Of a stretch of 64,000 nucleotides of DNA, positions 25,200-56,965 are shown one piece after another. A program made the translations under genes and the position numbers. The stretch comes from Chlorokybus atmophyticus (lineage: Eukaryota; Plantae; Mesostigma and Chlorokybus algae): the NCBI GenBank assembly GCA_009103225.1, contig RHPI01001428.1, positions 308,158 through 372,157 of the forward strand. Direction: 5' to 3'. The notes beneath the pieces were generated by a model. That model saw only the letters and a list, made by a program, of their open reading frames with translations, was not told the DNA's origin and searched no databases. The first letter of the stretch is position 1. The number at the start of each line of letters is the position of its first letter.

Positions 25200-28100
25200 A
25201 GATGGCAACCAGAGCAGTACCTGCCAGCCTGCCAGAGGCTCAATGAGAAGGCTGTGCATGTTGACTAGCACATGAAGGTATGTGATGATTGTTCGGTGCT
25301 TGCACCTGAATTTAACTCAGATTCTGTGTCTTGGTCTCATTAGCATGCAAGGGACGAGACCTCGTATTATGCTGAATGGTCTCCTGTGATTATTGAATTG
25401 CAGCGTAGGCACTCTGAGCAGTTACCAACATCACCTTAGTTAGATTGCCTCACCTGAAGCTCCAGTTCACCAAGCACAAGCAAAATACATAGGGTACCAC
25501 ATTTGTTATGATTAATGTACTTACAATTTGACTTGAGTGTATGACATGGCATAAGAAAGCTCAGCCTGTCATTTCACAAGATTATTATAATTCCATATCA
25601 TATCAACAATGTCAAACACACGCTGAGTTATGTACATACTATTGAAAGTTCCGATCATTTTACTCAAACGCTAATTATACTATTACATGCATGAGATTCA
25701 TGAGCATTATTGATGTGCATTGCAATATGGTATTGCATGAGCTTTATGTGATGCATTGTGGTAAACATCAACACAACCCACCACATGCCTGCATGGTCGC
25801 AATAACATATGAAACAATACACTGATGTATGAGTATTTTTACATGTTAACTTTGGACCATGACATGACATATTGTGTACATAACAACTCTCAGCGTGTCA
25901 TTGCAAATGATTATTTTAATTATAAAATAAATATATATGCATATTCAATGACAATAAGCTTGCAACAAGTGCCATCAAGCATTAAAATATTATTGTACAG
26001 TATGTTTGAAATAACGCAGTGTTTGAAATATATAAATTCTCATTATGAGTAAGTCCGTCAACGACTGGCGGTGCTGTTATATTGATATTAGGATATGCCC
26101 ACCAACATGATACATATGACATAAGGCTAGCAATAATATATATAAATCGGTTGAGCAGGATCCCCGAAGAAGCGCGCAATGTTCATATGTTCCAATTGGC
26201 ATATCATGGATATCACACGTGTATACACGTGTCATATTTGCACGCTTGCACATCAGTCGCCAGTGTAGTGCATACGGCAATAATGTCTATGTAATTGCGG
26301 AATGCTATGTCATGAGCGGCTTATATCATGTTGCATTTGAGCGTAGAGATTGATTAACGTTTTTAGACCAAGTTATATCATCAATGAAGTATATAATTAC
26401 TCGACCTTTTTTATCACATGATTACTGCAAATTACAATTATTTAATCAAATATTTGATACAAATATTTAAGCTCAATACTCATTTACAAATCTATATCAC
26501 TTATTGAATATGCGATTGCGAACTGTCGCAATAGCAGATGCTTGAGGCTTAGCATATGATCATGTAGAATATAAATGCATAATTGGTTTACTGCTTATGT
26601 ACCTCATATCATTACGATAACGATCCTACTACGTTGCAATTAACGTTAAGAACTGCACTTATTTGTGGGTTGGCAATTATGGCTGTATCCGCTAAGTATT
26701 AGTAACGCATGAAAAGTCCTTAACACACTCCTTGCAGCATGCAACGTTTGCAAGTAATCTTCATGAAAATATATGGGAAAACACGTGCGTCAAAAAACCA
26801 TTGTAAAAGTATCATCCAAGATCAATGTCATGTTTTGCATATCGTCATTCAACTGCCACTTTTGCGCCCCATTTTAAACTCAAGGCGTATAAATTCAATC
26901 ACATTTGCATTAAAATCTTTTTGCGGATGTTATGAAAGCTTTTGTGTAACGTATATGGTGATTCTGCAAGTGTCATGTTTATAACATATACTTACGCATA
27001 TAGCGTATATTAACACTTTGTGTACAAAGTATTAATGTTATAATCATAGCAATTACTGTTGTGTATATGTAAACCATGTTAGGATTTGATGTTGTCGCTG
27101 ATTCAATGACGCACGGTACGCGAAGTTGTTATATACGTAAATGTGTATAAATAAAATGTAATCGTATAGTAGAGTTAGTTACAGCATCTGCAGGATAAAG
27201 CGACAACGTACAAAGCTGATTTAACAGCCAAGCTAAATGGAGACACAATGCAAAAAAGGTAATTGCTACACTTGGTTTCACTTTTGTACAACTTTGTTGC
27301 AATAACATAATCGATTACCGCTCCGGTCGATGTAATAGGTTGTATCTAAGTAATTCTCATTTTACATCGACCCGAGCCCGCGGCAATTGACTCCAACCGT
27401 CACTAGACTGCATGTTTGCACTTTGCTTTGCTGCACTTAATGTTGATCTACGATATGAAGTCATCTAAGGCGCAGTGCGGTCGATAGCTATCTGCGATAC
27501 CTGCATATGCAGCCCCCATAAATTTATCTTTGAATTACTCTGCATCAAAGATTGCAGAACAGCAAATTACCACCGATTGCAAAAGAGCCAACTTTATTGC
27601 ATGCAGCTAACAACTGTCTTTAAACATTGTAAAGTGTTAAACATGTTGAAGGGCCGAGTTGGACAAGTATTGATGAAACTACCTATTAGGATGCTAGGAT
27701 CGTGTATACAGCCCTAGGAAGCTAAGACGAGGCAAGAGCAAACTACCACTATAAACTACCAGCTGCATCAAGGTCTGGCTAGGCTAGGCCTGGCCAGGTT
27801 AGAAACTACTAGCTGCATGCATGCATGCATCTTGCGGTATAGCATTGAGCATAGTAAGAAGCTACTACTGTACTGCAGTGATATGTAAGAAAGATGTGGC
27901 AGCCTAGTCCACACGATGATTGAAACATTCAAAATGCACGGTTTAAGAATCCAACCGTAGATTAACGGCTTTCAATGGTGGTTCTTCTACGAGTTACCTT
28001 CTGATCTAACAACTTTTTCAGGTAAGACATCTTTGAATGTAAGAGTACGTGAGACATGTAACAAGGTGGGCAACCCTCTAGATGTCATGCATGTTCCGGG

Positions 28101-30350
28101 GCTCAAGGTGTTACAGAAAGCGAGGTGATATGTAAGTGGTTAATAATGAGTTTTTGAAAGACGCGTTTTGCATGCCTGTCTTTCAATTAAAAATGACAGA
28201 CTTCCACAGCACTCCATTGTTCAGCAGTGTAATCGCTTTCTACCTTGATGTCAATGAAGTATAAATTATGATTCCAGTGCTGCTGCTGCCTGCAACGCGG
28301 TGCAAAAAGCTTGCCTTTCACTGCATGCAGCTCGATGCATTGCAGTAAGCGCAATGGAATGGGGAGACAAAGCAAAAACGAATAAACTTTACTTTTACAA
28401 TTGGGGGATATACATGCAGAGGTAGACTTTACTTTTACTTGATTTTACTCTCTGTGTGACAAGAAAATATAACAACAAATTATTGTATAACACAATCAGT
28501 TTGGAAGGGGACTTTGTTGGACCCTTTTGTTAGAAAACAAAAATGTATCAAATTCAACCAAGAAAGTAATGAAAAGAATGAACAATAGGTTGGCTATTGT
28601 ATCATTTGTAGTACTTGTACTATAATATATACCACAAATCGGACTTTTTTAGCCATCAAGTTGCAAATGTGTTGTACCGATTTATAATCGTGCCATATAT
28701 GGTTGAAAGCGGAATTCCGCGGGCCTACACGAGAAAATCAATGTTAAAATTTATTCAATACCAAGTTGGTCTATGGTGTAGCACCCTTCAATTTTCAAAG
28801 TCATACTAATATTGCTGCACAGCATGACCCACTGGGTAGTTATAAATTAATCATGCTATTTCAAGCATATCATGGCTACCAACTTTGCAGTAGCATTCAT
28901 ACATGCTAGCAAACACATGTTACATTTAATTGTGCACACATTATCAGGTTTGGGATGTTGTTGAAGTAAAACATTATGGCACATTGCGCACCCGCAGGCT
29001 GCATACATAAGTATGTTTTGAAATTTCCACGCCATACTCGTGTGCCAATCAATCCAACAAGTAATTTTCTATGAATATTACGTTGCAAGGGATGCCCTCC
29101 CAGGAGGGTTTTAGTTTTAAAGGTCTATATCTACGGTAGCATGTTACCCAAGTTGCATAAAACAAGTTCTGAATGCAATACCGTTACCGGCCAGCCTAGT
29201 ATTGAGAAGACCAATCATTTAAAAAAAGGATCTTGTAAACGAGTGCGTAAATGTTTAAAAAAAATAAAATAAATGAGATGCCGAGGTAATGTTGTTTAGG
29301 TAGACTTAATGAGTTCAACAATATGCTATGATGTACTTTATGTTTTTTCACACCAATAAAAGTCAAGGAAGGCCGGTTACACCATCACAAGAGATTACAT
29401 CTCGCCTGCGCCTTGTTGAACGAATCATCTTGTACAACAAGCGCTATTTGCATGCTGTTGTTAAGTAATGCTCAATCGTAATGAACACACATGCAAAGCT
29501 TCTCGCACTGATGTAGTCTGGCCCACGCACAAGGTGCTGTAACATGCGTCAACGTCAATAGGTCTCAGTTGTAGCGTTAAGTTCATATAATGGTTGGTTG
29601 CAAATGCTTGCTCACATCTTCAAGATGTGCAATGCAATAGCAATCATTGTCGAGGTCTGAACAGTGGAACATTTGTTGCCTTTGCAGACAATCCACCACT
29701 TCCATCCAACAAGTCCTTGAATATTGTTTTGGCAATGCCGAAATGGCCCCACTTGGCTCAAGAAGGGATGGTGCTGTATTGAGTGGGTGCGGTGTCACCG
29801 TACGCAAAACATGAACACAGCATCTGAGTTAATTTTTACCCGCCGTATGCATGCGTAGTATACGACGAATACCACGTGATTATGTATGGTACGTGCAGCA
29901 ATACGCAAGTTGTTATTCCGATACATGTACACATGCCTATGTATGTTCATTTATGTATGCGGTAAATTTGCTGCACGTACCATCATAATGTGTTTAACGC
30001 ATCGGATGTATATTCGCAATTTGCCGCAACAAATACCAACTTCTGATGGGGTAATTATCATCTTTGATCATGGCCTCTGATAAGTATGACTCTTTTGCAA
30101 TGCCTTGCGCTTGAAATTTTTGACCTCATGCTTCATACATTCATCGCAAACAACAGCACGATCATCACATTTCATTCTTCGAACTCTTAACAATCAATCC
30201 ACATCACGTGTTACTTCAATGCAACCTTTCAACAACATGTTTTCAGTTTAATCATTGTGTATACGCTGTAAAATCTCTCATCGATAGGAGTTGTTTCAAC
30301 CTTAGTCTTACTTAGTAGAAGAGAGGAGGGCTGTATCAATGGTGGGGATC
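25200..30350. other. AT-rich, ORF-poor intergenic island (possibly decayed mobile DNA)
   Basis: Visibly more AT-rich than the flanking genes. It contains only short stop-riddled ORFs and no spliced gene could be built. Confidence 0.65.
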
Positions 30351-39131: not shown

Positions 39132-42100
39132 CTAAGCCGGCGAGTCATACGCGGGTGGTGGCGGTACATACTGCTGTCGTTGCACCTGCGGTGCTGCGGG
39201 ACTTCCACTATATGGCGGTGTGGCTGCGACGAGCAGCACCGCGTTGGCGCTATGTCCTCGTCGCCGGCGCACGAGGACGACGGCCACGGCTGCACCCACG
39301 GCAAGGAGGGCCCCGCCGACAGCCGCACCCACGACAATACCCACGGTAGATGAGGAAGTCTTTGTGGACTTTGTGATAGTGGTGGGTGGGGGAGGGGGCG
39401 GGGGAGACTGCGATGGCGTGGGGGATGATGTTGGTGGGGTGGTTGTTGGCGGGGGTGTGCTTGTGGCCGGTGGTGAAGAGGAGGTTGGCTTCGGGGTTTG
39501 GATGACCACGAAGTCGCCCGTGCGCGTGCTCGTGCACGTGACGGATGTTGATGAGGATGAGTTGACGGCGATGCCTGCGCTCGAGAGTGTCCCGTTGGCC
39601 GCGACGACAGTGTAGCACTGCATTGTCTGAGTTTGCGTGTTGACAAGAGCCGAGTCCACGGGTACACGCACGCGGTACGTGCCACCCGCCTTGGGAACGA
39701 CATTCACCTCAAGACCCGTGGCGGAGTCCGTGAAGTGAACCTGAAGCACGCCCGACACGAGTGTCCCGCCAACAGGAAGAGTCTTGACCGACCTCGCCAC
39801 GAGTACGGGGTCCTGCACGTACGTAAGTTGCATGTCGAGGGTGGTAGGACAAGTCCCATTGGCGTTGCTGCTCGGACACGTGTAACCCGTGACGGGGGTG
39901 TCGAACTTGGCCAACGCCGTGTTGACGGCGAGGAGCTGACGACGGCGTCGTGAAGGCGTGCTGGCAACATTGAGGAGGAATTGTGCGCCGAGGAGGCCCT
40001 CGAGGGTGTTGCGGTCGACGAGGAGGACGATGATGTCCGAGGAGACCACGACGGGAGCTTCGTCTGGGGAGGCGTCTTTGAGTAAAGAGTCTCCAAGTGA
40101 TTGTAGAGCTGTGTCGAAGCGAGCACGCTCTTGCGTGGAGGCCAACAAGGTGAGGCTGTCGGTGGAGTTGGAAGAGCTCGCGTTGTACGTGTACGTGCCG
40201 AGCATGTTGCCGAGCACGCTCAGGACGGTGTTGCCAACGTCGCTCGTGACCGCGTCCGTCGACGAAGACAACCTATCCGTCACGAACACAATTGTGCGCA
40301 TGGCCGCATCACGTGCACCTGCGTTGATCTCACCGGCGTCGCCGCCCGTGACTTCAACCAATGCACCGATGATGCCGACGAGGTTTACGTTGGCGCCGGA
40401 GCTCGCCGCGCCACTCGTGGCGGTAGAGTATAAAGCCACAGCGAGCGTGGCGCGGATCTCCGCGTTGCTCGTGGCGTTGGTGGTGGTGTTGGCGTTGAGG
40501 GCGGAGCCCGCGCGAAGCACGTTGGCAAGGGTGGCGGCGGTGTCTTGAACAGCCTGCGAGGAGGTTAGGGCAGAGAGTGCGGACGTGATGTCCACGACGT
40601 ACGGGTGAACATGCACGGATGCCGTGACACAAGTCTCGGCCCCGTATGCATCCGACACGCAGACGTAACACGTGCGCGTGTAGTTGTCGTCCGGCATGCC
40701 CGCAGGGAGCGACGTGTATGTGTATGTGCGCTGCTCCCAGTTCATCACGAGCGGGTAGCGCAGACCCGAGGTGAGGTAATACCCAAACTCGTACGTAAAC
40801 GTGCCACTATTGTCGGTCCATCCATTAGCCGTTGCCGTGAACTCATTCCCGCCAAAGGCCAAACCATCAATCCGATCGAAGGAGAAACAATCCGTCGCAT
40901 TGGCAGCGTTGCAGAAAGGCTTCTGATTCATCGCGATTGTAGTATACGCCTGCGCGCTGGCCCCACTCTCTACATCTGTCATGGTGAGAGTGAAGTCATA
41001 GCTCACGCCACTCTGCAGCGCAACAGACAACACCACGAGGGTCTTGGACACGTTGGACGTGGCTTGGATGGACGCATCACCAAGGTCCAACTTGTCACAC
41101 GTCCAGAGGTATGTCACGGGTCTAGACGAGGTCAACAGGGCCTTCAAGCGTAAAGGCGTGCTCGGGTTGAAGTACTTTGGACACGTTACTCCCGTCCCGC
41201 AGAGTGGTATGATCTGTCCCGAGGGCGTGTTGTCCGTCCCGAGCACCGCGTGGACCTCCGTGACAGTGGCGGACTCGCGCTCGCAGTTACCCGACGCGTC
41301 GCAGTCGCCCTTTGTTGCCACTAAAGTGATGACGTACGTGGTCCCGCCGCTCATCGCGTTGGACATGATGTCGTAGGTCGACGCGTGAGACTCGGGAGAG
41401 TATTGGAGAGTTGAGTTGGGCTCGGTCACGCCGAGGAAACAAGGCAACTCGTCGGAGGTGATGCAACTCCAGTGGAACTGGAAGGCTGCGAGAACACAAC
41501 ACAAGCAGGTGAGCTGCAGGACAAAAGACATGGCAAGATAGCAACTTTCTGTCTACACGTAATGACAGCAAGAATGCAAACTTAACGTACATCCGCAACG
41601 CTACGCAAACAACAAGCACAGCAGCAACAACAACAACAAGTCCCACGCAGTACGCATGTACACAGCTTAGTGCGTTGTTGCACCAACTCAGCACTCACGT
41701 TCGATCTCGTTGTTGGGATCATCGGGGTCGAGTGAGTTGGCTCCCGAGAGCGTGATCGGTTGATCCACACGTGCGTCACGGTTGCCACCATCAATGACAG
41801 CCAGTAACGGTGATGCCATCACCGTCAGGTCCACTCTCAGACTAGCACTGCCATCCGCAACACCCTCAAGACTAGCCGTGAGTGTTAACGTGTATGTTGT
41901 GCCGGGCACGAGGCCGGCCGTGCCGGGAGCCACGTAAAGGTCTTTGGAGGCGAGGGCCGCGGCGGGGAGGGAGAATGTGGGCGAGGATGCAGCGAAGGAC
42001 CACGCGTACTGCATGCGGAGGTTGGAGGCGGTGCTTGAGGATATTGTCGCAGCCGCGCAGAGAGCGGATTGAGCGTCGACGCTGGTTTGGACGTATACGC

Positions 42101-45100
42101 CGTCGGCGATGAAGAAGTTCCTGGCGCTGTCGCCCAACACGTAGACTCGTGGCACAGCCACACCCTTCTTCTCAAACCTGCAACATCACCCGCAGCTCGT
42201 GAGCAAACCTCTCATGTTGATAATCGTCATCTTCATGTGATCGACGCTTCTGACTATATGCATACGCATGCACACGCGCACGCACGCAGACGCAGACGCA
42301 TATGCATACGCACACGCACACGCACAAGGTAATGCAATCTGTATCCTTTCCCTCACCTCCAGATGGCATTGTCGGTGGCATTGAACGCTCCATACACCAC
42401 CAGTTCCACGCTATAGTTCCCCGCCGGCAAGCTATACGGCAGTTCCAACTCACTCTCCCCTTGCTGCGCCACTATCGCCCCCGCCACCACACTCGTTCCC
42501 GCTCCCGCCGGTGCCGACACAAGCCTCCACATATACCTCTCCACCTCATCTCCATCAGCGGCCATCGAGTATGACCCGTCTATTGTGAATATGTTGGTAT
42601 TGGCACAGTCTGCGGCGCCAACAACGGCGAGAGCGTTGATGATGGAGATGGGTGGGTCTGGGTTGGAGGGAGGGAGGAGGAAGACGGTGGTGGTGGTGTC
42701 GAAGGGGACGAAGGGGGAGACTTGCATGAGAGAGTTGGAGAGGAGGTGGAGGGTGCTGGCAATGGTCACGGCCGCCTGGCGACCAAGGGTCACGTGCACG
42801 AGCGCACCGGAAACAGTGCATATGGCACCGTCGCCGAGTCGGCCAGCGGTCGCGGCGTCAAAGAGGTTCTGATACAGATGACACAAAACTGGTAAGCTGT
42901 GTATGTGTGTTTGTGCGCGCTCGTGTGTATGTGTGTGCATGTGTGCGTGCATACCCGTGCGTGTGTGCATGCGTGTGCACGTAAAAGGATGCATATTCCA
43001 TCTGGCGTGCGTACCTTGCAGAAGACAGATTGGGGCACGGCGGCTGCTGTCAAGTTGACGTCGATCTTGCGTCCGTCATTAGAGAGGCGGGCGGCCGTCA
43101 TGGTGGGCGCAAGCGGGAGGCACTGTCCGTAGCACCGCGCGCAGGTCTGCGCGCCCGTCTGCTCGTCGCAAGCGCAGTCGTAGCAGCGGTCCGTCGCCTG
43201 GCATATGAGGCCCGCGCCGCAGGAAGCATCATTCGAATTGTAACAGTTCTGTCCCGGGCCAACCTGAGACAAAGACGACTATCAGTAAGACAAGGCAATC
43301 AAGTTGAGTGCGCGTCGTGTGGGTACATCCTTGGTGTCTATAAGTTGGTGGTTGTTAAGTACAACCCTCATGTTTTCAATTCAAGTTCAATCGTACTGCA
43401 GCTGTGAGCTTGAGTGCAAAACTCGCTGGTCACACACAGACACACACGCACGCACGCACGCACGCACGCACGCAGTGCATGCGACTTGCAAGTGACTGTT
43501 GTATGAGTAGTTTGCACGTCCACAATATACCAACCACAAGTACGTCAGCTCTTCTCACCACTTTGGGTTTGTTCTGGTAGTTCGCGCACGGACTGCTACA
43601 CGTTCCCAGGCACGGCCCGCAGTTCTCTCCTCCCGTATCTCCATCACACTCGCACTTCCTCTGACACCCGTTGCTGTTGCCGTTGTACGTCGCGAAGTTG
43701 TTGCAGCGCTGCGCTCCCGGGCAGTCCGTGCTGGCGTAGCAGCTGCAGACGGTGGAGGTGCCGTTTGAACGGCAGGAAGGAGGAGGGGCGGAGGGGGGCG
43801 AGTAGCCGGAACAGAGGTTCAGACCCAACTTGGCGTTGCAATCATCTGAAGGAGAGAAGAGTTGTCGGTGAGTGGCAGTCACAGAGACGCTAACACATCT
43901 TGCTGCACAGCAGTGTGGGACAAGTTTTCCAAGACGAGCTTCACTGCGCATACACGCACGTACGCATGCACATGCTCACACAGTCACACCTACGCACACG
44001 AGTACACAGACACACACACACACGCATGCGCGAGCACACACGCGCACACGCACACAGATACACGCACGCGCACGCCCCCCTCGCCCCAGCTCACACACCA
44101 TCAAGTACGTGCTCACACCCCTCACTGTCGTTCTCATTACCTGAGCAGAACGCCAGCATCTGGCACAGCCTCACCGGCCTCCCCGCCAGTCCCGGATTCG
44201 CGGCTATCGCCTGACTACCCTCTCTGCACGCATCCTCACTCCCCTCCCCTGACTCTTCCCGGCAGTACTGCAGGAATCCCGCCACGGGCGTGACGGACGC
44301 GGGCTGGGTCTTGAGCCATGCCGGGAAGGCTGAGACCTCGTCAATACAAGTCTGGCAGTCTTGGCACAATGATCTGCAATTGCCGCCAGGGATGCAGTCT
44401 TCGTCGGAGACACCAGTGCAGGACAGGAGGTCGGAGGCGGTGTAGCATTTGGAGGTGCCTGTATAGGGAGTGGAGGAGCGGTCATCAGACTCTCTTCGCA
44501 TGCACGCACGTACGCATGAAACAGAAGTCCCCATGCATATACATGCATGTGTAACGAGTGCCTCCGACCCACCATCGTAGCAGTAGCCGTTGGTGGAGTT
44601 GCCGCTGTCCGCCTTCCACACGCAGCCGTACGGCGTGTTGGCCTTCCGACACGCCTGCTCCGCAGTCCCCAACTGCTGGCACCAATCTGTTTCATCCACA
44701 CACCAACTCATCAACCGCCACCATCCCGCACCCCCACCCCCCCACCCCCACACCCTCCCACTCACCCCACGCCGGCCTGCACTCAAACTCCCACTCGCAG
44801 TCACTATCGCCACCACACTCAGGCAAGTCGCTCCCGATCCGACAGCACTGGTCGTCCCCTCCGCAGGCCTCGGTGGCGTTGCGGCAGCGCCCGGTGGAAA
44901 GGGAGTCGCAGAGGGGGTCGGAGGAGCAGGAGGAGGGGTCGGAGACGAGATAGATGCAGGGGTTGACGACTGGAAGGGGTAGAGAGAGAAGAGGTGAATG
45001 GGTGGGTGGGGGAGTGGGGGTGGGGGAGTGTGGGTAGGAGTAGGGTGTGGGTGTGCGTGCGCGCGTGCGTGCGTGCGCATGCGAGTGTGCCATGGAGTGT

Positions 45101-48100
45101 GCGTGGGGGTGCGCGTACACCCACCACACGAACACACTCGTGTGTGTATGTGCCTGTGCATGCTCAGTGTGTAACTTACCCGACCAACAGTACTGCGACT
45201 GAGGGTCCCATTCGCACCCGTTATCGATGTCGCCAAGGCACGTGGCCCCGGAGCGATGCCCATGGCATTCATCTAAACACAGCACAACACTTCAGCCACA
45301 CACACACACTCTCTCAACTCCACATACTAGACACATCCCTTGTCACCCACCTCGCGCGATGCGGCATCCCTCCTCCCACGCGCAATCCTCCTCTCCATCA
45401 CATGTATCCGCATCAGTGAGTCTGCTGCACCCATCACCTTGATCGTTGTTGTTGTGATCCGTCTGGTTGTTGCGCACGGTGCAGCGGCTCCCCATCTGGC
45501 ACGAAGGAGCGGCATCGCAGGCGGTCGGGTCCGAGATGTATCGACAGAAGTCTTGAGCTGGAAGAGGAAGAGAGGTGAGGAGAGATGGACAGTGTTGTTG
45601 TGTGGGTGGGTGTGCTGAATGTGGGTGGGTGTGCGCATACCAGTGTAGCAGAACCCGAGGTGGTTGTTGCGATCGCTCTCACGCGACCAACCGCACCCCA
45701 AACTTTCGTCACACGTTGCTTCATCGCCAAAGCCCTCGCAAGGACCTGTCAAACACATACCACATCAACTCTCTCCCACCCAACACCCCAAAACTTCCAT
45801 CACACTTCTCCCTCATCCTTACTTATGGGTGCGCAGTTCTCCTCCCACTCGCACTCCCCGCCGCACTTCTCCTCGGCCGTGACCGGGCAGCACGTGTCGC
45901 CTGGCGGGCACGTGTTGTTGTTGTTGGGCGGAGGGGCGCTACCGGATGTGTCGTTGCGGGCGCAGCGTGAGATGAAGGTGCACAGGTCAACACCGTTGTC
46001 TTCGCCAGCGGTCACGCAAGCGTCTTCGGAGGGGGCGGACTCGCACGGGTTGTCTGAGTCTGGTGTGGAGTATGAGTTAGTTGTTGTGTCGTTTGTATCA
46101 AAGAGTGGAGATGTGAGTTTGTGAATGTGTTGTTGTCGCGCGTACTTACCCATGTAACAGACGCTCTTGGTGCTGTCCCAAATGCAATAGTCGCTCTCGT
46201 CCTCACAATCGCTCTCAGTGCGTTTGTCGAAGCAAGAAACTGCACGGGAGAAGTCAATAGTCAAGCTAACACCACATGCACGTGAGTACGCACACACACA
46301 CGCACACAGACACACACACACGCTCTTACACACACAAGCGCGTACACAGGCACACGCACACGTGCAACAGCACTAACACCACACATCACACACGTCTCAC
46401 CATCATTAAGCACGCATTCCGTCTCCCACCCACACCCTCCCTCCCTCCCGCACTCCTCTTTGCTCCTCCCGCAGCACGCGGGGTCGTCCTCCGGTCCGCA
46501 CTGGCTGTCGGTGTTGTTGTTTTGCGTGATGTTGGCGAGGCAGCGTGGGGGAGAGAGGGAGCAGAGGGCGGTGTGGGCGTCGTCAAAGATGTTGGAGCAT
46601 TCGAGGGGGGAGAGGGAGACGCAGGGGTTGTAGGCTGGGGAAGGGGGGAGGAGTCAGGAGGGAGGTGTGTGTGTGCGTGCGTGCGTGCTATGTGTGCTTA
46701 CTTGCAGTGCAGAATCCTTGCTGAGGTTGTTGTTGCTGTTGTTGTTGTTGCCATCTGCAGCGTCCATTCGTCTGCTGGCACGCGTCCTGCGCCTTGTCTC
46801 TGCAATCATCTGCATACACACCACCCCTCCACAAAGTCAATCACACCACACTCCCTTCCCCTCCCTCCCCCCCTCACCCCACACCCACGCACACGCATAC
46901 GCACCGCGAATGAGCCCGCAATCGCTCCTCCACGCGCAAGATGTGTTATTGACCCCGCGCCGCGCAGCGCACTCGGCAGGTCCCTGAGCCCCGCAGCATG
47001 GACCGTCCTCGGGCAGGCACTGAGGACCCATCGGCGGCGTGTTGGGGCCATGTGGACCCGGGGCATAGGGACCGGGAGCGTAACCGGGACCCGGAGAAGG
47101 TCCTTGAGGACACCCTGCGAGGACAGGAAGTTAGTGTGCGTGTATGCGTGTGCGTGTGCGTGTGCGTGCGCGTGTACACTCTGGCTGTGTTGTTGCAATC
47201 CTCACCGCGTGTGTCGACGCAGATACCCAGTGCGTTGCATAGCCGCATCGGGTCTCTCAGTATGGTTGTGTCCTGGGTGACTCTGCGTGTGACATTGGCA
47301 CATTGATCTCTCGAGGCCCATCCCTGCATTACGCAGGATTGATTGAAGCGTCGAATGCCCTCATCAGGACTGATGTTGGCAGTGTAGTTGACGGTGATCC
47401 ACTGCGCGGCGCCGTCCATGCAGCGACCGCACGCCTCGCAGCTGCGGTTGTTGCCGTTGCTGGGAGGGGCCGGGGGGCTGTTGTTGTGGTTGTATGAGCA
47501 ATGGGCGGGTGAGAGAGTGCATAGCGGGGTGGTGCGTGCCGTGTCGGCGAACTTGATGTTACATTCGGAGGGGGAAAGGGCCGCGCATGGGTCCAACACT
47601 GTGTGTGTGCATGCATTAGTACAGTCCAACGACTTCTAGCTGTTGGTTTTGTCAGGCATTATCGTCATGGTCCTACCAGGTGAACAGAAGTCACCATCAG
47701 GGCCCTGCTGCCACTGGCACTGTCCGTTGTTGGCTCGCTGGCACTCGTCGCGCGACCGTGTGCTCCTGCAGTCATCTGCAACACAACAAAACCAAGGTGA
47801 CTTAGCACCAGAACATCCCTCCCAGCCACACACACAATAGTTTGTACCTTGTATGAGCGTGCAGTCCTGGCGCCACGAGCACAGGCCTCCCGCTCGTGAC
47901 CCGCAGTCGACTTGGTCCCGCGCCCCGCAGCAGGCGTCGTTGGCAGGGCACTGTGGGGGACCCGTTGGCGTTGGGGGACCCATTGGTGGTGTTGGGGGAC
48001 CCTGCTGAGGAGGGTTGTTGTTGTTGGGAGGAGGACCCACGGGAGGGAAGCACGCCGAAGGCATGTCGCACAACCCGAGCGCGTTGCAGATGCGTGGAGC

Positions 48101-51100
48101 GTCGCGTAGTAGCGATGGGTCGTCGAGAGTCTTGCGGACCATACCGACACACTGCAAGGCGAGAACCCATCGTAAGCATCGTGTACACGACTCGTGCGAC
48201 ACGCAACATGAGCGTGAGAGTGTCTCCTCACTTTTGTGGGCGTGGTGTTGTTCCATGTGGGGCAGGTGGCGTTCAACTTAAGTCTCATGTTGTCCGGCCC
48301 GGCATTGGCGTAGTCACGGATGAAGCGATTGGCATCATCCGCGCAGCGGTGACAGCTGTCGGTGCAGTTGGGTGTTGGGCCAACACCCGGAGCGGGAACA
48401 GGACCCGCGCCAGGACCCGGCCCGTACGTGATGTTGCTGTGGCACATGTTGTTGTATCGGCAAACGGACACGCCGCCGCGGGACAGTTGTGGGGATAGGC
48501 AGCCCTCCGCACCCGACCAACCGTCACACACGTTGCGCACTGGTACACAGGTAGTTAGCGCTGTTGTTGTTGTACAAGTATGCATAAGCCAAGATAATGT
48601 TAGCTTGTGCCACCAACTCTACCTGTTGTGCATCGGTCATTGGTTCTCTTGTCCAGGCCGCAGCCAAGGAAGTCGTAACCAGTGCACTCGCGCGTGCTTA
48701 GTGTGGAACAAAGGTCTGTGCAACAAGAGCGTCAGCAGCTGGCATCATATTATGCATGCGTTGTTGATCCTGCGGCCTGGTGTAAACTGCTGGAGGCATT
48801 GACACGAGTGTGGGATTGAGTGGGACCTACCATTAGCTGGCAGGCATTGGCCGCCCCATGTGCAATTGGCAAGCGGACAGTCTGTGATGGATGTGTACTG
48901 GCAGCACCAGTCTTGCCTGGAGTCGCACCCTGGATTGGAACACAGACTTGTTAGTAGCAGTACAATACACCTTGCTTGGCTTTCCGTTCTGTATCAGCAT
49001 ACACAGTATCTGTATCTCTGCTGCACCTGTGTTGTTAAGGTACGAGTTGGGGCTCGGGGCCGGTGCAATGGGCGGGCATCCTGCAGGTCAGAATGGAGGT
49101 TGTCTTTGGTGCAAGTGCAATACGTGATTGCCACAGCGGCATCATCCTGGCTTTGTTACTACTGACTCACCTTGGCAGAAAAATCGGGCGCACACCTCCA
49201 CCTGCGATCGCACGGGGCCAATGTCGCGTGATCGATTGTAGAACGCGAGGACGAAGTCGCACGGGACTGTGGTAAGGAGGTTCGACCCTGCCAGGCAGCT
49301 ATCCCTTGCCAGAGAGATATTGACCTGCCCATTGTCGATCGCGTTGGCTAAGCTCGCGCACATCCCGCAACCCTGATAATCGCATCCTCCGGAACCCTGA
49401 TTGGGTCCTGGTCCCGGGTTGGGTCCCGGGTTGGGGCTCCCAGGTGCTTGTGGTGCGCAGAAGGCACGGCGGGTACATGCCGGCGAGGGGCAGTCTTGAG
49501 GAGAGTACTGCGGGCAGGTGTTGGAGCTGTTGCGGCAGATGGCGTCGCCGCTGCCGACAGGCAACGAGGCTGCCGGGTGTGCCACGTCCCACACGCAAGG
49601 TGACCCAGCGGTCGTGCACGCTGACGAGGAATTATACTTAAGGCAGAAGTCTGCAACACATACACACCACGCCTTGTGAGGCCACATTAACCGCCACCAA
49701 ACAAGAAATTGTCTAAAAGCCGGAACAAACACTATACAAACAAGCACAGGTTGCTGACACACAAGATATCAACCGTATTACATAGATACGCGCAGTCTTA
49801 CCATCCCCCAGCGACCGGCACTCGTCTCTCCACACGCATCCGCTATCCTCGCCGCACCGCAGAAGCGTCTCCCTCTTCCCACATTGGCTGTTGTCTTGTC
49901 CCGGGGGGGCTCCCATGTTGGGACTCGGAGGCTGGGAACCAGGGCCTTGGCCAGGACCTTGGGGAGGACCTTGGCCAGGACCCTGGGGAGGAGCTTGGCC
50001 GGGAGCTTGGCCGGGGCCTTGGCCGGGGCAGGCGAAGCGTGGCCGGCAGACTGGCAGAGGGCTCCCCACGGATGTGCAGGAGGAGGGGTTGGTGGATGCC
50101 ATGCAGGGGTTGGAGACTGTTGCAAGGAGGGACAATTGAGATGTGTGTGTAACGTAAACATGCATTTTATTTGAAAGTAAAAGAGCGTCTTGAACGTACG
50201 GCTTGTGCATTGCGTGGAACGGTCGGACCACTGGCAGCCGAGGTTGGATGGGCAGGTCGTTGAATCCGCGCCAAGCGAGCATACGTCTGCGCACACCACA
50301 ATCAACGTCAATCGTTTTAGCGTCTAAACGTGAACCTGAAAAGCAGAAAGCAAGACGAGTTCAAGTACCAAAGGCCATGTCGCAGCCAGCATAGAGCTGT
50401 TGCTCGATGGGGCAGGCGTGAGGGTCAGCTTGCCGGCAGCCCTGGCGTGGGAGGCAGACGGGGACACCGCGGCTGTCGGTGAGGCCCATGCACGCCGCCA
50501 GCGAGCTGCCCGCCAGCTGGCACACGTCCACTACTGACTGGCAGGAGCCATCATTGCTGTTGTTGTTGCCGCCGCTGGTGTTCTGCTTTCTCCAGACGCA
50601 GCCCAGGTGCGCGTCGCAGTCCTTGTCTGTGCGGGCACTGCCGCAGACATCTATTGCAAACAAAAGTCAGCCCTCAAGGAATGGTGCACTGCTAATAGTC
50701 ACGTTGGCCTCTTGTTGTTTCTTACCCCATGCGAGTTGGCAGCCCGTCTGCCATGCGCACCCCTCAGCCTTGGCGCAGTTGGCTGGTGCAGCAATGGCGC
50801 AGCACGTGTTGTTGTTGCCTTGGCCCGGGCCGGGTGCAGCAGCAGCGTCTGTGCTAACACCTGCCGCCGCCGGTGTGCGCGTTGGTGGGGGAGTCCCGCC
50901 CTGCTGCTGGGGAGCTGGGGCACCACCTTGTTCACCTGGACTTGGAGGACCACCTTGGTTGGGACCTGGAGGACCGCCCTGGTTGGGATCTGGAGGACCA
51001 CCTTGGGTTGGGCCTGGCGGACCACCCTGGTTGGGACCTGGAGGACCACCTTGGGTTGGGCCTGGCGGACCACCCTGGTTGGGACCTGGGGGACCACCTT

Positions 51101-52440
51101 GGGTTGGGCCTGGCGGACCACCCTGGTTGGGACCTGGGGGACCGCCTTGGGTGGGGCCTGGAGGGCCGCCTTGGGTGGGACCTGGCGGGCCGCCTTGGGT
51201 GGGGCCTGGCGGGCCGCCTTGGGTGGGACCTGGCGGGCCGCCTTGGGTGGGACCTGGCGGGCCGCCTTGGGTGGGACCTGGAGGACCACCTTGGGTTGGG
51301 CCTGGCGGACCACCCTGGTTGGGACCTGGGGGACCGCCTTGGGTGGGACCTGGAGGACCGCCTTGGGTGGGACCTGGAGGACCGCCTTGGGTGGGACCTG
51401 GAGGACCGCCCTGGTTTGGACCTGGTGGGCTACCCTGGTTGGGCCCTGGAGGACCTCCTGAGGCTGGCCCCGGGGGTCCTTGGGTTGGAGCAGGACCGGG
51501 TCCTCCAGGTGGCCCGGGGACGGGACCGCCACTTGCAGGAGGCGCTCCGGCATTGAAGCAGGTGGTTGTGTCATAGCAAACGCCTTGCCAGCTGCATACA
51601 CCTGCCCCCGTTGCGTCGCGGTTGCCCAAGCAGAGCGTGCGGTTAAGCGCAGTGATGGCGCACACGTCCACACCTGCGTGCATGACGCAGCGAGGGGTGT
51701 GGTGGGTGCTGTGGTGTAGCTACGGGTTTGTTTGAGCTCTTATGAAGCGCATCTTTGCATGATATGTGCAGATGTGGTAGCAGTTGTTGGCATGCGCGGG
51801 CGACAGCACCCCCCCCCCCNNNNNNNNNNCCCCCCCCCCCCCAGCCCCCACCCCTCAACACCCACCCACCCACCAGTGCACCTTATGTTGAATAGGTGCT
51901 ACGGAGTTTGAGTGCAGCTTGTGTAAATATGCATGCAAGCATTAACGACCCCCCACCCCACCCCCTCCCACGCGCCCCCCCTTTCCCTACCCTATCATAT
52001 CTCCAACATGGTAGTTACAACACAGAACTAGTCACCTCATGATAGTAGAGGTACTAGTAGTGGTGGTGGTAGTAGTGGTAGTAGTGATAGTGGTAGTGAT
52101 AGTAGTAAAAGCCACCATAGTGCATGCACATCTAACTCTCGATCACCCCACTCACGTCTGTTGCAGGCCGTCCCGCCCGCTGAGTTGGTGTCCCAGGTGC
52201 ATCCCAGGCGCCCGAGGCAGGTGCCGGGCTGCTTCGCATCGGCGCAAGGGTCTGTCACAAAGAGAGAGCATACGTCATCCAGGTGAGTACCGAACTTATC
52301 CTCTCTCCCAGTCATCATATAGGAGGTGATGCGTTTCAGTTGCACTCAGCTCAAATTACCTTTGGGGGCTGTGCAGATCTCACTCCAGCCACAGATTGTG
52401 TTTGCTCTGCATTTGGCAGCGTCCAGTGGCCCGCAAGCAT
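39132..52440 (-). CDS. Giant type-I membrane protein: Cys-rich PSI-like repeats, Gly/Pro repeats, four saposin-like domains, REJ/PKD region, GAIN/GPS-like region, TM helix, short PPxY tail
   Basis: A continuous spliced reading runs from DACGPLDAAKCRANTICGW (acceptor 52441) through many CxxxxCxW modules and four saposin-like units ending in C..L..C or the variant CARFFC. REJ-type segments follow (FTIDGSYS, YSVELVV, LLAVIDGGNRDARVDQPITLSGANSLDPD, FQFHWSC, YLWTC, FTYEFGY, CYVCVSDAYGA), then VTCTSTRTGDFVV, a Thr/Pro stalk, TM GIVVGAAVGGALLAVGAAVAVVLV, RRRR and PPPPAY. The stop is at 39132. The true start is not found; a candidate first exon lies at 53098-53156. Confidence 0.85.
50955..51458 (-). 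repeat. Coding 24-bp minisatellite, about 21 units encoding GGPPGP[T/N]Q
   Basis: The translation of ORF 50667-51683 shows about 21 consecutive octapeptides, and 21 x 24 bp = 504 bp matches the span. Confidence 0.95.
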
Positions 52441-54961
52441 CTGCAACCACAATGGTATGAAGTAATGGACAACAACAGAGATTACACCAATCAAGCCAAG
52501 GACGCACTGTCACCAGAAACTAGCATGAAGGAGGGCAGTGGGGGTTGCATGCGTGCTTGAAGACAGTTTGCACAATGGACACATAGTGACTTTGAAACTG
52601 TATGATAGGTCAGTAAAGTGGTATGACCATCAGCTGTTAGACTGACTGAGCCTGGCAGGTCATGTCGTTACCACGAGCCTGAACTTGCTAAGAACAATTG
52701 CAGACAATTGTGGCGGAGCTTATAGGTTATGAGCTTCGTAGCAATGCACGAAAACCATGCGATGTATGCAAGATGAAGTCACTTCGTTTGCATAAAGCAT
52801 GACCGCGAATATCGACGTACAGAGTCAAGTCAATTCAAGCGTGCTTTCTCGTGATGACCATCTCGTTGACTAATTAGTCAAAATCAGTAAGTATCATCCC
52901 CCTTTCTAACATATCCCCCCCCACCCCACCCCCCCCACCCCACCCCATGCACGTAGGCCAAAGACAACATTGGCATGCACGCATGTGCATGTACGTGCAA
53001 GCAGAGTCGCGTGTTTGAATTACCGCACACGCGTGCACACACACACACATGCTTGCGCAGAAGCACACAAACTCCTACATGAACAAGCAACACTGACCTT
53101 GGGCGGAGACTGCGACAGTCAGTAATGCCAGCCCGCACAACACCAGCGCCAGACATCGCTTACTTATGCAATCGCCCATAAGGACGCGCTCAACGCCCAT
53201 CGTGGATGGTAAGCAAGTGTTGTACTCTTATTGCTACCAGGCTAGTTCATATATCTTAGGGCGAATGAAATAATGTGCTGTAATATGTAGTAATCGGAAA
53301 ATGTGCTGCAGTAGCAGCGGCAGTGATACACTAAACTAGCGAGTTGAATCAGAGGATGAGAGCCTAGGATTGTACACAGCTTCAGCCCCTCAACCAGCGG
53401 TTGAATCAGTTGTACAGTGTTGTGTAGCCAAACAGATCAGCAGAGGAGTGGTGAGATTGAAGCGCAAAACGACTTAGAGCCGTATCACCACTTGCTGTTT
53501 TCCACAAGCTCCCATCCCACTCCACCGCAGCCCAAGGCATAGTCAAGTCATACTGCCATACGCCCCGTTGCTTGACGTGGTTAAGCAGCTCGCCGCCTTC
53601 TGCTGTGCGAGCTCCACCTTTGAATCAGTCAGAGGCTGGAGGTTTGTAGGGTTGCTTCTGGCGATCAGATATCCACATTGTTGAGGGGCGGGCAATGCGT
53701 GCGTGTACCCTGTCTCCCCTTGACCGTTGTTGGTGGCAGACCGGCCGTTTTGAAAAAGCGCAGTCTGTGTGCCCGTTTCTCCTCTACTTCAGAGTTATGT
53801 TGAGGCAAGCAATGTGAGTTGAAGCAAACTGTGCAGTCGGATCGCCCGAGGGGGGCCCATCACCCCATCCATGTGGTAAAATTAGGGCATGCGCAACGTA
53901 GTTACTGTATAATTACGCCCTTGGCTCCCAAGACTTGGTATCTGCCTCTAATGCATAAGCCGGTGGATCAGATGGCGTTCCTTTTCAGGCTGAAAATTTC
54001 AGCACTATATTTGGCGTGTGTGCAAGGGGAGTCACGTGACGGCGCCCAGTGTGTCGCACACTGCGCGAGGCTGCTGCAGCGCGCGCCCGGGCATGTCGCT
54101 CTCGCTCTCTCTCTCTCTCGCTCTCTGTCGCTCTCTGTGCGCTAGCAGAGTCGTGTCGCGGTTGTCACTGACAACTTGTCAGGTCAGAATATTGCTCGAC
54201 GTCAAGGGCACTGTTCATATCTGTCTCTAATTCACTGACTACCTACCCATCACTGTTTACAAAAGAAGCAAAGCACAGCATGCATATGGTATAGCAAAGG
54301 GGCCAATAGTATAGCACACAACAACCAGCCAACATAACAATGCATATAAAAAGCTGGTGCTGCCCGCATGATGGGCCAAGTTTTGAAGTATAAACGTTCA
54401 GTACCGAAGTTTGTTTCATTTTGCAACCTCGCATGTTTTATATGTTGTATTTGTATAGCATAAGCAAGAACGATTATGTGCTGAGACGAAATTATCTTGT
54501 TTATGTTATTTGCATAATTAATGTTGATTATAATGATTATATCGTCAATCACACAGCATGTAACACAGCAGTATCTTGCATGCTGACAAGTATATCGTTA
54601 TGCAACATTAAAACTTTTGTGGGTGTCCTTTCGTGTCGTTAACAGCCACTAAAAATGTGACAACCCTAATAATGGACATTGCCACCACCGCTGTACAATG
54701 TTGCCACCGCCTTCTTGTGGACAGCTTTTATGAAAATTAGGCATGCATTTTATATTGCTAAACATAGTGTACTCTCATGTCATGGTGGCAAATGTTTTCC
54801 ACCATAAAGTATGGCATGATAGTGTGGTCCCCCCAATTACTACACCCGCAATCTTGTACTGTGGCAGTACGCGGAACACACTTTGCAGGGTACGTTGCAC
54901 AGTATAACACACGAGGCAATGCTACGCTGCGCATTGATACAACCCCCCTGTTCGCCCCCCC

Positions 54962-55823
54962 NNNNNNNNNNNNNNNNNNNNNNNNNNNNNNNNNNNNNNN
55001 NNNNNNNNNNNNNNNNNNNNNNNNNNNNNNNNNNNNNNNNNNNNNNNNNNNNNNNNNNNNNNNNNNNNNNNNNNNNNNNNNNNNNNNNNNNNNNNNNNNN
55101 NNNNNNNNNNNNNNNNNNNNNNNNNNNNNNNNNNNNNNNNNNNNNNNNNNNNNNNNNNNNNNNNNNNNNNNNNNNNNNNNNNNNNNNNNNNNNNNNNNNN
55201 NNNNNNNNNNNNNNNNNNNNNNNNNNNNNNNNNNNNNNNNNNNNNNNNNNNNNNNNNNNNNNNNNNNNNNNNNNNNNNNNNNNNNNNNNNNNNNNNNNNN
55301 NNNNNNNNNNNNNNNNNNNNNNNNNNNNNNNNNNNNNNNNNNNNNNNNNNNNNNNNNNNNNNNNNNNNNNNNNNNNNNNNNNNNNNNNNNNNNNNNNNNN
55401 NNNNNNNNNNNNNNNNNNNNNNNNNNNNNNNNNNNNNNNNNNNNNNNNNNNNNNNNNNNNNNNNNNNNNNNNNNNNNNNNNNNNNNNNNNNNNNNNNNNN
55501 NNNNNNNNNNNNNNNNNNNNNNNNNNNNNNNNNNNNNNNNNNNNNNNNNNNNNNNNNNNNNNNNNNNNNNNNNNNNNNNNNNNNNNNNNNNNNNNNNNNN
55601 NNNNNNNNNNNNNNNNNNNNNNNNNNNNNNNNNNNNNNNNNNNNNNNNNNNNNNNNNNNNNNNNNNNNNNNNNNNNNNNNNNNNNNNNNNNNNNNNNNNN
55701 NNNNNNNNNNNNNNNNNNNNNNNNNNNNNNNNNNNNNNNNNNNNNNNNNNNNNNNNNNNNNNNNNNNNNNNNNNNNNNNNNNNNNNNNNNNNNNNNNNNN
55801 NNNNNNNNNNNNNNNNNNNNNNN
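54962..55823. other. Assembly gap (N run) flanked by poly-C tracts
   Basis: A run of N. Smaller gaps occur at 1159, 51820-51829 and 57602. Confidence 0.99.
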
Positions 55824-56965
55824 GCCCCCCTTTCACCACGTGTATTTAGAGAAGTGTCGAATGCCCACATGTATATCATTTCACATGAGATGCCACATGT
55901 ATGCAGGCACTCGGGTGCTGTTTATTTTTGCTCGCATGAGCTGCCAGAGGGCCGCGGCTATGGCATCAGGAAGTCCTATTGCTATCAGATGCTAATGATC
56001 ATTAAGTTGTTATTATGGTTTTGGTACTACAAGCCGCTTGTTGTTATTTAATCATTGATAAACACTTGATAGGCTCAGATCCTATCAACGCACGCGTACG
56101 TCTGCTTAAGCAAAATCAATCAAAGCATATTGTGATTGACTTTTCAGGCTCGTCAACACCGCAGACATGTGGTCTTAAGACAGCAAGGTTGGTAAAACCG
56201 GCTGACAATACTCGAGACATGTGAGCTGTAAAATCGGCGCCTTAACCACTAGGCCATGGCAGCAAAAATCGCTGCCATAGGGGGAGCCACACGTGCCTCA
56301 TACATGTCCCATACCATATTCGCTACATGAGCAAAGCTTCCAGTGGCAGGGGTCGAGCAGTTGTTATTATTATTGTCATGCATGCTCTTGCACGCCCGAG
56401 GCTGACCTTTACCTCTGTTTTCCTAATGCGCTTTGCAACTTGCCTAACCATTGATATTTGCTCCTTACTTGTTACATATCACCCTGATGCTTGAGGGTCT
56501 TGTGTACATGAATGTACATAATGGGAGATGCACACATGCATAGACAACATAACTTGTCTATGGCATGCCTCATACCCCACACAACAACATCTGGACACGG
56601 TCAACACAACCACCAGGCCAACAAACACTCAGGTTACCAACTGCCTCGCTACTCCTACCAATATACCCCATCCCCGTCAGTTGTGCATAGGCTTTCCAAT
56701 CACAAGCACAAGCAAGATGCACAGGCAAGCACACACGGCCACCCACACAACCAGGCACAGGATAGGTTGCTGTAAAGACAGCGCACAGACAAACTATGTG
56801 CTGTAGCTAAGTGCGTGAAGTGTGCAGCGCGAGAGAGGTTTGTTGTGGGGCCAAGGAGGAGGGGATGCAACAGACCTATGTGCACAGGTGCCAGGGTCAG
56901 GCTGAGGTCTTGTTGTCGACGACAGCAACAATAACAGCAGCAGAAGGAGGTTGTGCATGGCAGCA

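Follow-up and report, generated by a model that had tools for sequence, protein, structure and literature searches.

The 64-kb window studied here (64,000 nucleotides of contig RHPI01001428.1 from the streptophyte alga Chlorokybus atmophyticus; all positions below are window coordinates) carries on its minus strand a large predicted gene, which an earlier note on this DNA had described as a giant polycystin-1/adhesion-receptor-like surface protein bearing four saposin-like domains. Our heuristic splice parser joins 30 exons into one open frame of 9,540 nt, i.e. 3,180 codons, running from an ATG at 53200 to a TAG at 39132–39134 without internal stop. In the predicted protein, a signal peptide is followed by about 22 small modules with a C-x-W core (CxW modules) and Pro/Gly spacers, among which four six-cysteine units are placed, then by a REJ domain, a Pro/Thr/Ser stalk, one transmembrane (TM) helix and a 45-residue tail (Table 1). 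Two of the six-cysteine units are solidly predicted to be saposin-fold domains, and the protein that carries them is a single-pass REJ receptor, not a polycystin-1.

Exons were called with our own dynamic-programming splice parser, which combines GT-AG introns with a codon model derived from the large terminal exon. The third pass was used, after manual removal of two small splits judged spurious, one in exon 1 and one in the last exon. Single exon pieces served as queries for searches and folding, whereas the joined coding sequence was used only for length, phase, cysteine and pattern bookkeeping. Twenty-two of the 30 exons are phase 1-1, phases are compatible along the entire chain, and each of these exons contains whole cysteine modules, mostly one to three. 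The cysteine count is even in 24 of the 27 cysteine-module exons (exons 2–27), and the three odd ones end in a complete saposin-like unit. Exon 1 is the sole exon with an ATG plus signal peptide, and neither an internal signal peptide nor an internal TM helix was seen. Since the earlier note had ended the gene at 52440, its range falls short of this exon (53200–53098) by about 760 nt. The ectodomain has a cysteine content of 9.4 % and the predicted protein 44 N-glycosylation sequons.

The gene region is GC-rich (0.56–0.64) and appears on the minus strand as a chain of cysteine-rich stop-free stretches split by short CA/TG-microsatellite spacers. The intron at 43994–44071 and many others of the gene are packed with microsatellites of CA/TG and CACG type, whose translation as runs of His-Thr or Cys-Val gives long spurious open reading frames on both strands. 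The exon layout, with its phase 1-1 exons and whole cysteine modules, would suit exon duplication and shuffling. Many exon junctions recreate a GAT (Asp) codon right before the first cysteine of a module.

Table 1. Features of the predicted gene, listed from its 5' to its 3' end in window coordinates.
Feature	Position	Strand	Evidence and remarks
Exon 1: ATG and signal peptide	53098–53200	-	Sequence view; donor AAG/GTCAGT, phase 1; hydrophobic core at residues 15–33
Stalk, exons 2–24	44573–52440	-	Gene models: about 22 CxW four- or six-Cys modules, four-Cys 'NPC-type' modules, Pro/Gly spacers and units 1–3; nearly all phase 1-1
Assembly gap	51820–51829	.	Inside a homopolymer run (poly-G on the coding strand); within intron 3 (51674–52155)
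Tandem repeat spacer	50938–51459	-	24 nt x 21.8 copies; encodes the eight-residue GGPPGP(T/N)Q
Unit 1: divergent six-Cys unit	49175–49369	-	Regular expression; Cys pattern alone, C-x2-C-x20-C-x11-C-x22-C-x4-C
Unit 2	48062–48357	-	Exon pieces 48232–48357 and 48062–48151; 80-nt phase-0 intron 48152–48231 (GTGAGG...TTGCAG)
Unit 3: saposin-like, best supported of the units	47219–47431	-	Profiles; AlphaFold2 model, pLDDT 79.7; Na-SLP-1 top at Z 5.9
Unit 4: saposin-like, with the N-terminal Cys extension typical of the algal subfamily	44145–44366	-	Profiles; AlphaFold2 model; structure ranks
Exons 26–27: two larger Cys-rich modules	43015–43845	-	Exon 27 matches P0009 residues 3949–4009, BLASTP E 1.5e-8; no Pfam match
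Exon 28: beta-rich PKD/Ig-like region, DGS...Y.W motif	42357–42868	-	Translation; BLASTP to P0009 residues 4020–4069
REJ, N-terminal part (profile positions 2–117)	41709–42047	-	PF02010, E 6.6e-14, 51.8 bits; BLASTP E 3.6e-19 to P0009
REJ, C-terminal part (profile positions 121–432)	40572–41486	-	PF02010, E 2.6e-23, 82.8 bits
GPS-like segment, ending in TCTSTRTGDFVV	39498–39620	-	Motif resemblance; language-model look-alikes
Pro/Thr/Ser mucin-like stalk, 51 residues	39345–39497	-	Between GPS-like motif and membrane
Single TM helix, then RRRR	39270–39344	-	Hydropathy 2.5
Cytoplasmic tail, 45 residues	39135–39269	-	PPAY (PPxY-type) at 39147–39158; TAG 39132–39134; TGTAA 39102–39106

All four six-cysteine units announced in the earlier note were found, on the minus strand. 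A regular expression for the pattern (C-x2-C, x20–30, C, x10–11, C, x18–24, C, x4–5, C) matched units 1, 3 and 4 and nothing else in the six frames of the window, and removal of the 80-nt intron of unit 2 restored its exact C-x10-C. No match was obtained on 50 nucleotide shuffles; residue shuffles of the cysteine-rich ectodomain gave a mean of 0.31 matches, with at least four in 0.3 % of the trials. Units 2, 3 and 4 share the spacing C-x2-C-x26–28-C-x10/11-C-x20-C-x5-C, which is the six-cysteine spacing of saposins, and unit 1 is a variant of it (x20, x11, x22, x4). In its second half, unit 2 is about 36 % identical to unit 3.

In order to evaluate the nature of these units, a profile of units 2–4 (alignment A2) was compared with 177,635 PDB sequences. 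Only three matches were returned at E up to 10, and all were human saposin B (4v2o/1n69), aligned end to end with E 0.01–0.025 and with all six cysteines in register. An exhaustive search of 1.84 billion protein representatives with the same profile gave 15 matches at E up to 0.001, consisting of six canonical saposin proteins, six members of a distinct group and three artefacts; P0001, P0004 and P0006 were rejected as relatives, being repeat artefacts. Five of the canonical matches contain 5–11 Pfam SapB domains (from Haliotis, Paramuricea and Gigantopelta, and two from JGI/IMG; one is named 'saposin'), and the sixth is a two-domain Tritrichomonas protein. The product of the gene itself was absent from this library (no match below E 1e-30 in the profile search); the gene, or the proteome of its genome, seems to be missing from the public protein collections searched.

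Similar results were obtained with profiles built without any window sequence. Unit 3 scored 41.4 bits against an algal-type profile made from 16 non-window units and 26.1 bits against canonical SapB, and unit 4 scored 39.8 and 17.0 bits respectively, while the best shuffled decoys reached 6.4 and 4.8 bits. In these comparisons, each half of unit 2 taken alone gave a weak score. Profile-profile alignment with hhalign related the window units to the algal units (probability 97.6 %, E 4e-12) and to canonical SapB (94.5 %, E 8e-8), the latter figures carrying some selection bias as the canonical set was itself found with the window profile.

Predicted structures point in the same direction. The AlphaFold2 model of unit 3 (alignment A4) has five helices at a mean predicted local distance difference test score (pLDDT) of 79.7, and that of the unit 4 exon (alignment A7) reaches 76.5, with a helical core at 85–92. 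Foldseek E-values were weak (0.7–2); the top rows for unit 3 were almost all saposins, and the row of highest probability for unit 4 was Na-SLP-1. When both models were compared with 48,161 chains by VIA-align, Na-SLP-1 came first for each (Z 5.9 for unit 3 and 6.5 for unit 4). At ranks 2 and 3 for unit 4 stood saposin D (Z 5.4) and NK-lysin (Z 5.1), and the latter was near the top for unit 3 too (Z 4.4). The saposin domain of acyloxyacyl hydrolase, CDNF and PAS factor appeared at lower ranks. The proposed AlphaFold check thus ranks saposin-fold proteins first for both models, at modest Z scores.

Together, cysteine register, profiles and models make units 3 and 4 solid predicted saposin-fold domains. 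Unit 2 is assigned to the same fold by its close sequence similarity to unit 3. Unit 1 is probably a divergent copy, as judged from its cysteine pattern alone. The former description of four saposin-like domains is therefore retained for two units directly and for a third by similarity.

The six matches of the distinct group (P0007, P0008, P0009, P0010, P0012 and P0014) lack any Pfam SapB match. They share with the window units additional cysteines on either side of the saposin core as well as a (K/R)(R/P)xxxC..LG.C motif. In alignment A7 the pattern reads ...C-x2-C-x2-C ... F..C-x10/11-C ... (K/R)(R/P)xxxC..LG.C ... C, and the six core cysteines are nearly invariant. We conclude from these sequence features that the units belong to a divergent, extra-cysteine algal saposin-like subfamily that has been overlooked by the curated SapB models. 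Like prosaposin, NK-lysin, hookworm Na-SLP-1 and the saposin domain of acyloxyacyl hydrolase, they appear as helical domains of about 80 residues with C-x2-C, C-x10-C and C-x5-C spacing. They differ from these proteins in falling below the Pfam SapB thresholds, in carrying one to four extra terminal cysteines and in lying within the ectodomain of a membrane-anchored REJ protein, whereas the latter are soluble, lysosomal, secreted or fused to hydrolases.

All algal-type matches other than P0009 are environmental or Logan sequences. P0009 is KAF8072463.1 of Scenedesmus sp. PABB004, a protein of 5,470 residues that was automatically named 'olpB', probably on account of its Pro-rich repeats. It confirms the expectation that related REJ giants exist in chlorophytes. 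Eight algal-type units (residues 2373–3850), missed by Pfam as well, are accompanied in it by a signal peptide, a single C-terminal TM helix and, in precomputed Pfam annotation, Lectin_C and REJ. Moreover, P0009 is collinear with window exons 25–30, its BLASTP matches (E 1.9e-7 to 3.6e-19) covering the exon of unit 4, the second of the Cys-rich modules, the Ig-like exon and the two REJ exons. The two proteins have in common the signal peptide, algal-type units, Cys-rich module, Ig-like region, REJ, Pro-rich stalk, single TM helix and short tail. Unlike the window protein, P0009 is devoid of CxW modules, contains C-type lectin domains and a long Ala/Pro/Ser repeat at its N-terminus, has eight units instead of four and is about 2,300 residues longer. 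A word-index search with P0009 residues 3040–4710 returned nothing beyond the query itself, and the global alignment A6 between P0009 and the residues after REJ was discarded, the query being scattered along the whole protein.

As this collinearity spans unit 4 to REJ, it links the saposin-like and receptor parts of the protein and supports one transcript, at least from unit 4 to the stop codon. It also follows from P0009 that the saposin-like-plus-REJ architecture is common to a chlorophyte and not unique to this lineage: the novelty formerly claimed for it is overstated, given eight such units upstream of a collinear REJ in Scenedesmus. The combination is nonetheless rare. None of the papers listed in our literature search pairs saposin with REJ, and the Chlorokybus genome paper makes no mention of REJ, polycystin or saposin. 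P0009 combines a C-type lectin with REJ, which is the pairing of SpREJ1 and polycystin-1, and adds saposin-like units to it.

REJ is the sole Pfam family found across the stop-free exon stretches. It is split by an intron over two adjacent exons, and both parts exceed the Pfam cut-off of 25 bits. The PKD half of the 'REJ/PKD' label fared less well: exon 28 has no Pfam family above threshold, and the PKD match (E 0.002), at 18.5 bits, stays below its cut-off of 23.5. No Pfam family was found in the 360 residues that follow REJ, and word-index protein searches with the C-terminal exon, either whole or as residues 1–660, gave nothing beyond the query itself. The language-model look-alikes of these approximately 360 residues are GPS clusters at 0.84–0.86, a lead only. 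The segment ends in TCTSTRTGDFVV, which we take to be in register with the GPS consensus, with R-T-G where H-L/T is expected and two of the four cysteines; Scenedesmus P0009 has RRSGTFVV at this position. The GPS-like region put forward earlier is thus reduced to a motif resemblance without the HL/T triad. A single hydrophobic segment follows the mucin-like stalk, as had been predicted, and the TGTAA motif lies 26 nt past the stop codon. The PPAY near the C-terminus could be a docking site for WW-domain proteins or ubiquitin ligases, which would fit regulated endocytosis.

This membrane-proximal layout distinguishes the protein from the PKD1 family, nearly all members of which have a recognisable GPS and many of which have PLAT and 11 TM helices. 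Here, there is no Pfam GPS match, the motif is devoid of HL/T and is separated from the membrane by the 51-residue stalk, and neither PLAT nor PKD_channel was matched by Pfam; no 11-TM or 7-TM region accompanies the one hydrophobic segment. The polycystin-1/adhesion-receptor comparison therefore stands for the REJ module only. The protein is neither a polycystin-1 nor an adhesion G-protein-coupled receptor, and carries a divergent saposin-like subfamily on a single-pass REJ receptor.

Upstream of REJ, the alternation of units with short CxW modules and Pro/Gly spacers was verified. The modules, of the form C-x8/9-C-x5/6-C-x-W-...-C, number about 22 when those in longer exons are included. Eleven exons encode one small module each, with four invariant cysteines and a nearly invariant Trp (alignment A5); a CC variant has six cysteines. 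They recall the PSI domain by their ...C-x-W-... core and similar size, and differ from it by having four or six cysteines where PSI has eight. Pfam PSI matches were sub-threshold (three of the approximately 22 modules; two of the 11 single-module exons, exon 22 with PSI, and exon 24 with PSI and PSI_Plexin-B; E 0.003–0.26, 12–18 bits against cut-offs of 23–27). A profile of the 11 modules found no PSI chain in the PDB, its only match being a VSG C-terminal domain at E 0.41. The 'PSI-like' label would accordingly denote a resemblance of sequence. The Gly/Pro repeat of the tandem-repeat spacer was considered as collagen and rejected, Gly not being at every third position. In the environmental P0007/P0017 and P0012 as well as in P0009, a Cys-rich module of about 35 residues (C-x5-DC...C-x-C..G.D.C) precedes each saposin-like unit, and window exons 26–27 resemble two such modules without a saposin unit after them.

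With the exon chain, domain identities and relatives established in this analysis, we find it somewhat probable that the locus is one gene for a type I single-pass surface glycoprotein of about 3,180 residues, whose stalk exhibits three, probably four, saposin-fold domains above a REJ, with a lipid- or ligand-related role inferred for them. After the signal peptide, an extended stalk of about 2,000 residues, made of small disulfide-locked modules and stiff Pro/Gly spacers, would display these domains at intervals. Towards the membrane would follow the two larger Cys-rich modules, an Ig/PKD-like domain, REJ, a probably uncleaved GPS-like segment, the mucin-like stalk, the TM helix and the PPxY tail. 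To judge from their fold only, the saposin-like domains may be binding sites for lipids or hydrophobic ligands, or membrane-contact sites, held off the cell; the lipid sensing formerly ascribed to the protein is overstated. By analogy with SpREJ1, the REJ region could act as a compliant juxtamembrane module. Any signal would have to pass via partner proteins or endocytosis because the tail has no enzymatic domain.

The nearest functional analogue is SpREJ1 of sea urchin, a large glycosylated REJ receptor whose ligand-binding modules lie N-terminal to REJ; both it and SpREJ2 have only one or two TM helices (PMC1934368). The window protein resembles it in having REJ near the membrane, other modules N-terminal to it and a single membrane pass, but displays saposin-like units where SpREJ1 uses C-type lectin and EGF modules. 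In Ectocarpus, REJ-domain proteins are candidate male reproductive (gamete) proteins. The mating role formerly suggested for the present gene is without support because sexual reproduction is unknown or has not been observed in Chlorokybus (PMC7027972, PMC8611356).

Several observations weigh against the one-gene, saposin-bearing receptor. Pfam SapB_1, SapB_2 and Saposin matched none of the units in any stop-free exon stretch at E up to 1 or 10. Unit 1 was undetected by any profile built without window sequence, whether algal-type or canonical SapB. The Z scores of 5–6.5 are modest and common for small helical bundles, and acyl-carrier proteins score alike for unit 3; because scores of this size are so common, the fold evidence is insufficient alone, and it agrees with the independent sequence evidence. 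In the juxtamembrane region, GPS gave no Pfam match at E up to 10 and no PDB sequence match, and the GPS/GAIN label is a putative one. The charge of the units is close to neutral, with neither a strong acidic nor a strong cationic excess (K+R against D+E: 5/5, 10/8, 8/6 and 5/9). The exon chain is a heuristic splice model of our own, predicted from DNA alone. The donor that follows unit 3, like the one that follows unit 4, is ambiguous; were a phase-1 donor at 44098 used instead for unit 4, the last cysteine, conserved in the algal subfamily, would be retained.

Some of these points, namely the missing SapB match, the Foldseek E-values and the nearly equal Z of acyl-carrier-protein-type bundles for unit 3, would fit another small helical disulfide-rich fold in which the saposin cysteine spacing has arisen by chance. 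We regard such a coincidence as highly improbable, since the profiles reach canonical SapB independently of structure with all six cysteines in register, and since two separate models rank saposin-fold proteins first, at all of ranks 1–3 in the case of unit 4. The heuristic gene model, the first two passes of which gave partly different exon sets, and the two longer introns (280 and 295 nt) on either side of exon 26, which lies between unit 4 and the REJ part, could instead be taken to mean that there are two or more genes, one for a secreted Cys-rich modular protein with saposin-like units and a separate downstream one for a REJ receptor. This division is unlikely: an ATG with signal peptide is present in exon 1 only, no stop, TM helix or signal peptide was seen inside a chain whose phases are compatible throughout, and P0009 keeps units, Cys-rich module, Ig-like region, REJ and TM helix in this order within one annotated protein. 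One long gene, as the earlier note had assumed, is the most economical reading, with one open frame, one signal peptide, one TM helix and a collinear P0009.

As to function, the charge of the units bears on the proposal that they are tethered or releasable membrane-attacking modules, acting in the manner of NK-lysin or amoebapores to fend off microbes at the cell surface. NK-lysin does rank near the top in the structural comparisons (Z 4.4 and 5.1) and the domains would be exposed outside the cell on a long stalk; however, the units are not cationic, several of them carry N-glycosylation sequons and no processing sites were identified, which makes this proposal very unlikely. Chlorokybus cells are found as packets in a gelatinous matrix (PMC8611356), and the protein might alternatively be a rod, similar to hydroxyproline-rich glycoproteins, that connects the plasma membrane with the mucilage or wall of these packets. 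Its saposin-like and CxW modules would then be protein-protein or protein-glycan knobs and not lipid binders. The long Pro/Gly and Pro/Thr/Ser spacers, the 44 sequons and a 45-residue tail without signalling domain would all suit such an anchor. REJ together with a PPxY motif in the tail is encountered more typically in receptors, and the saposin fold is best known for its interaction with lipids or membranes; we consider the anchor a rather doubtful explanation. The single-pass receptor with putative lipid- or ligand-binding domains is the reading that we retain.

The assembly is interrupted within and next to the gene. The gap in intron 3 lies between exon 3 (52251–52156, donor GAC/GTGAGT) and exon 4 (51673–50726, acceptor CAG). 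Since each of the two is phase 1, the reading frame is independent of the true length of the gap. If the gap is larger than drawn, it may hide a whole phase-1/1 exon, and such a loss would pass unnoticed because almost all exons are phase 1-1; the flanks of the gap read as none of the gene's module types in any frame. Directly upstream of the gene, 54000–56000 is a low-GC stretch with an assembly gap of 862 N (54962–55823), and the promoter side of the gene is therefore incompletely assembled. Further away, 26000–30000 is an AT-rich block (GC 0.38–0.39 against about 0.55 around it) without an open reading frame of at least 120 residues.

Saposin-fold domains are known as soluble lipid handlers, membrane-active peptides or hydrolase appendages. 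Their repetition along the ectodomain of a single-pass REJ receptor suggests a different use of the fold. Both domain types were already known, and one relative was already in GenBank under the name 'olpB', its units not called by Pfam. The same arrangement in a streptophyte (Chlorokybus) and a chlorophyte (Scenedesmus) defines a sequence subfamily that curated SapB models miss, and the alignment A7 profile provides a practical means of surveying algal proteomes for it. Very tentatively, the two proteins could represent an old and so far undescribed class of membrane-anchored receptors, present on both sides of the chlorophyte/streptophyte split, in which Pfam-invisible saposin folds would form a ligand-binding ectodomain for lipids, sterols or foreign membranes, coupled to a REJ/GAIN-like module. 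It would be, to our knowledge, the first receptor family with saposins as its sensing head. If true, this old algal class would offer a non-animal setting for REJ-module function, and a tractable case in which the role of REJ could be followed without an attached polycystin channel part.

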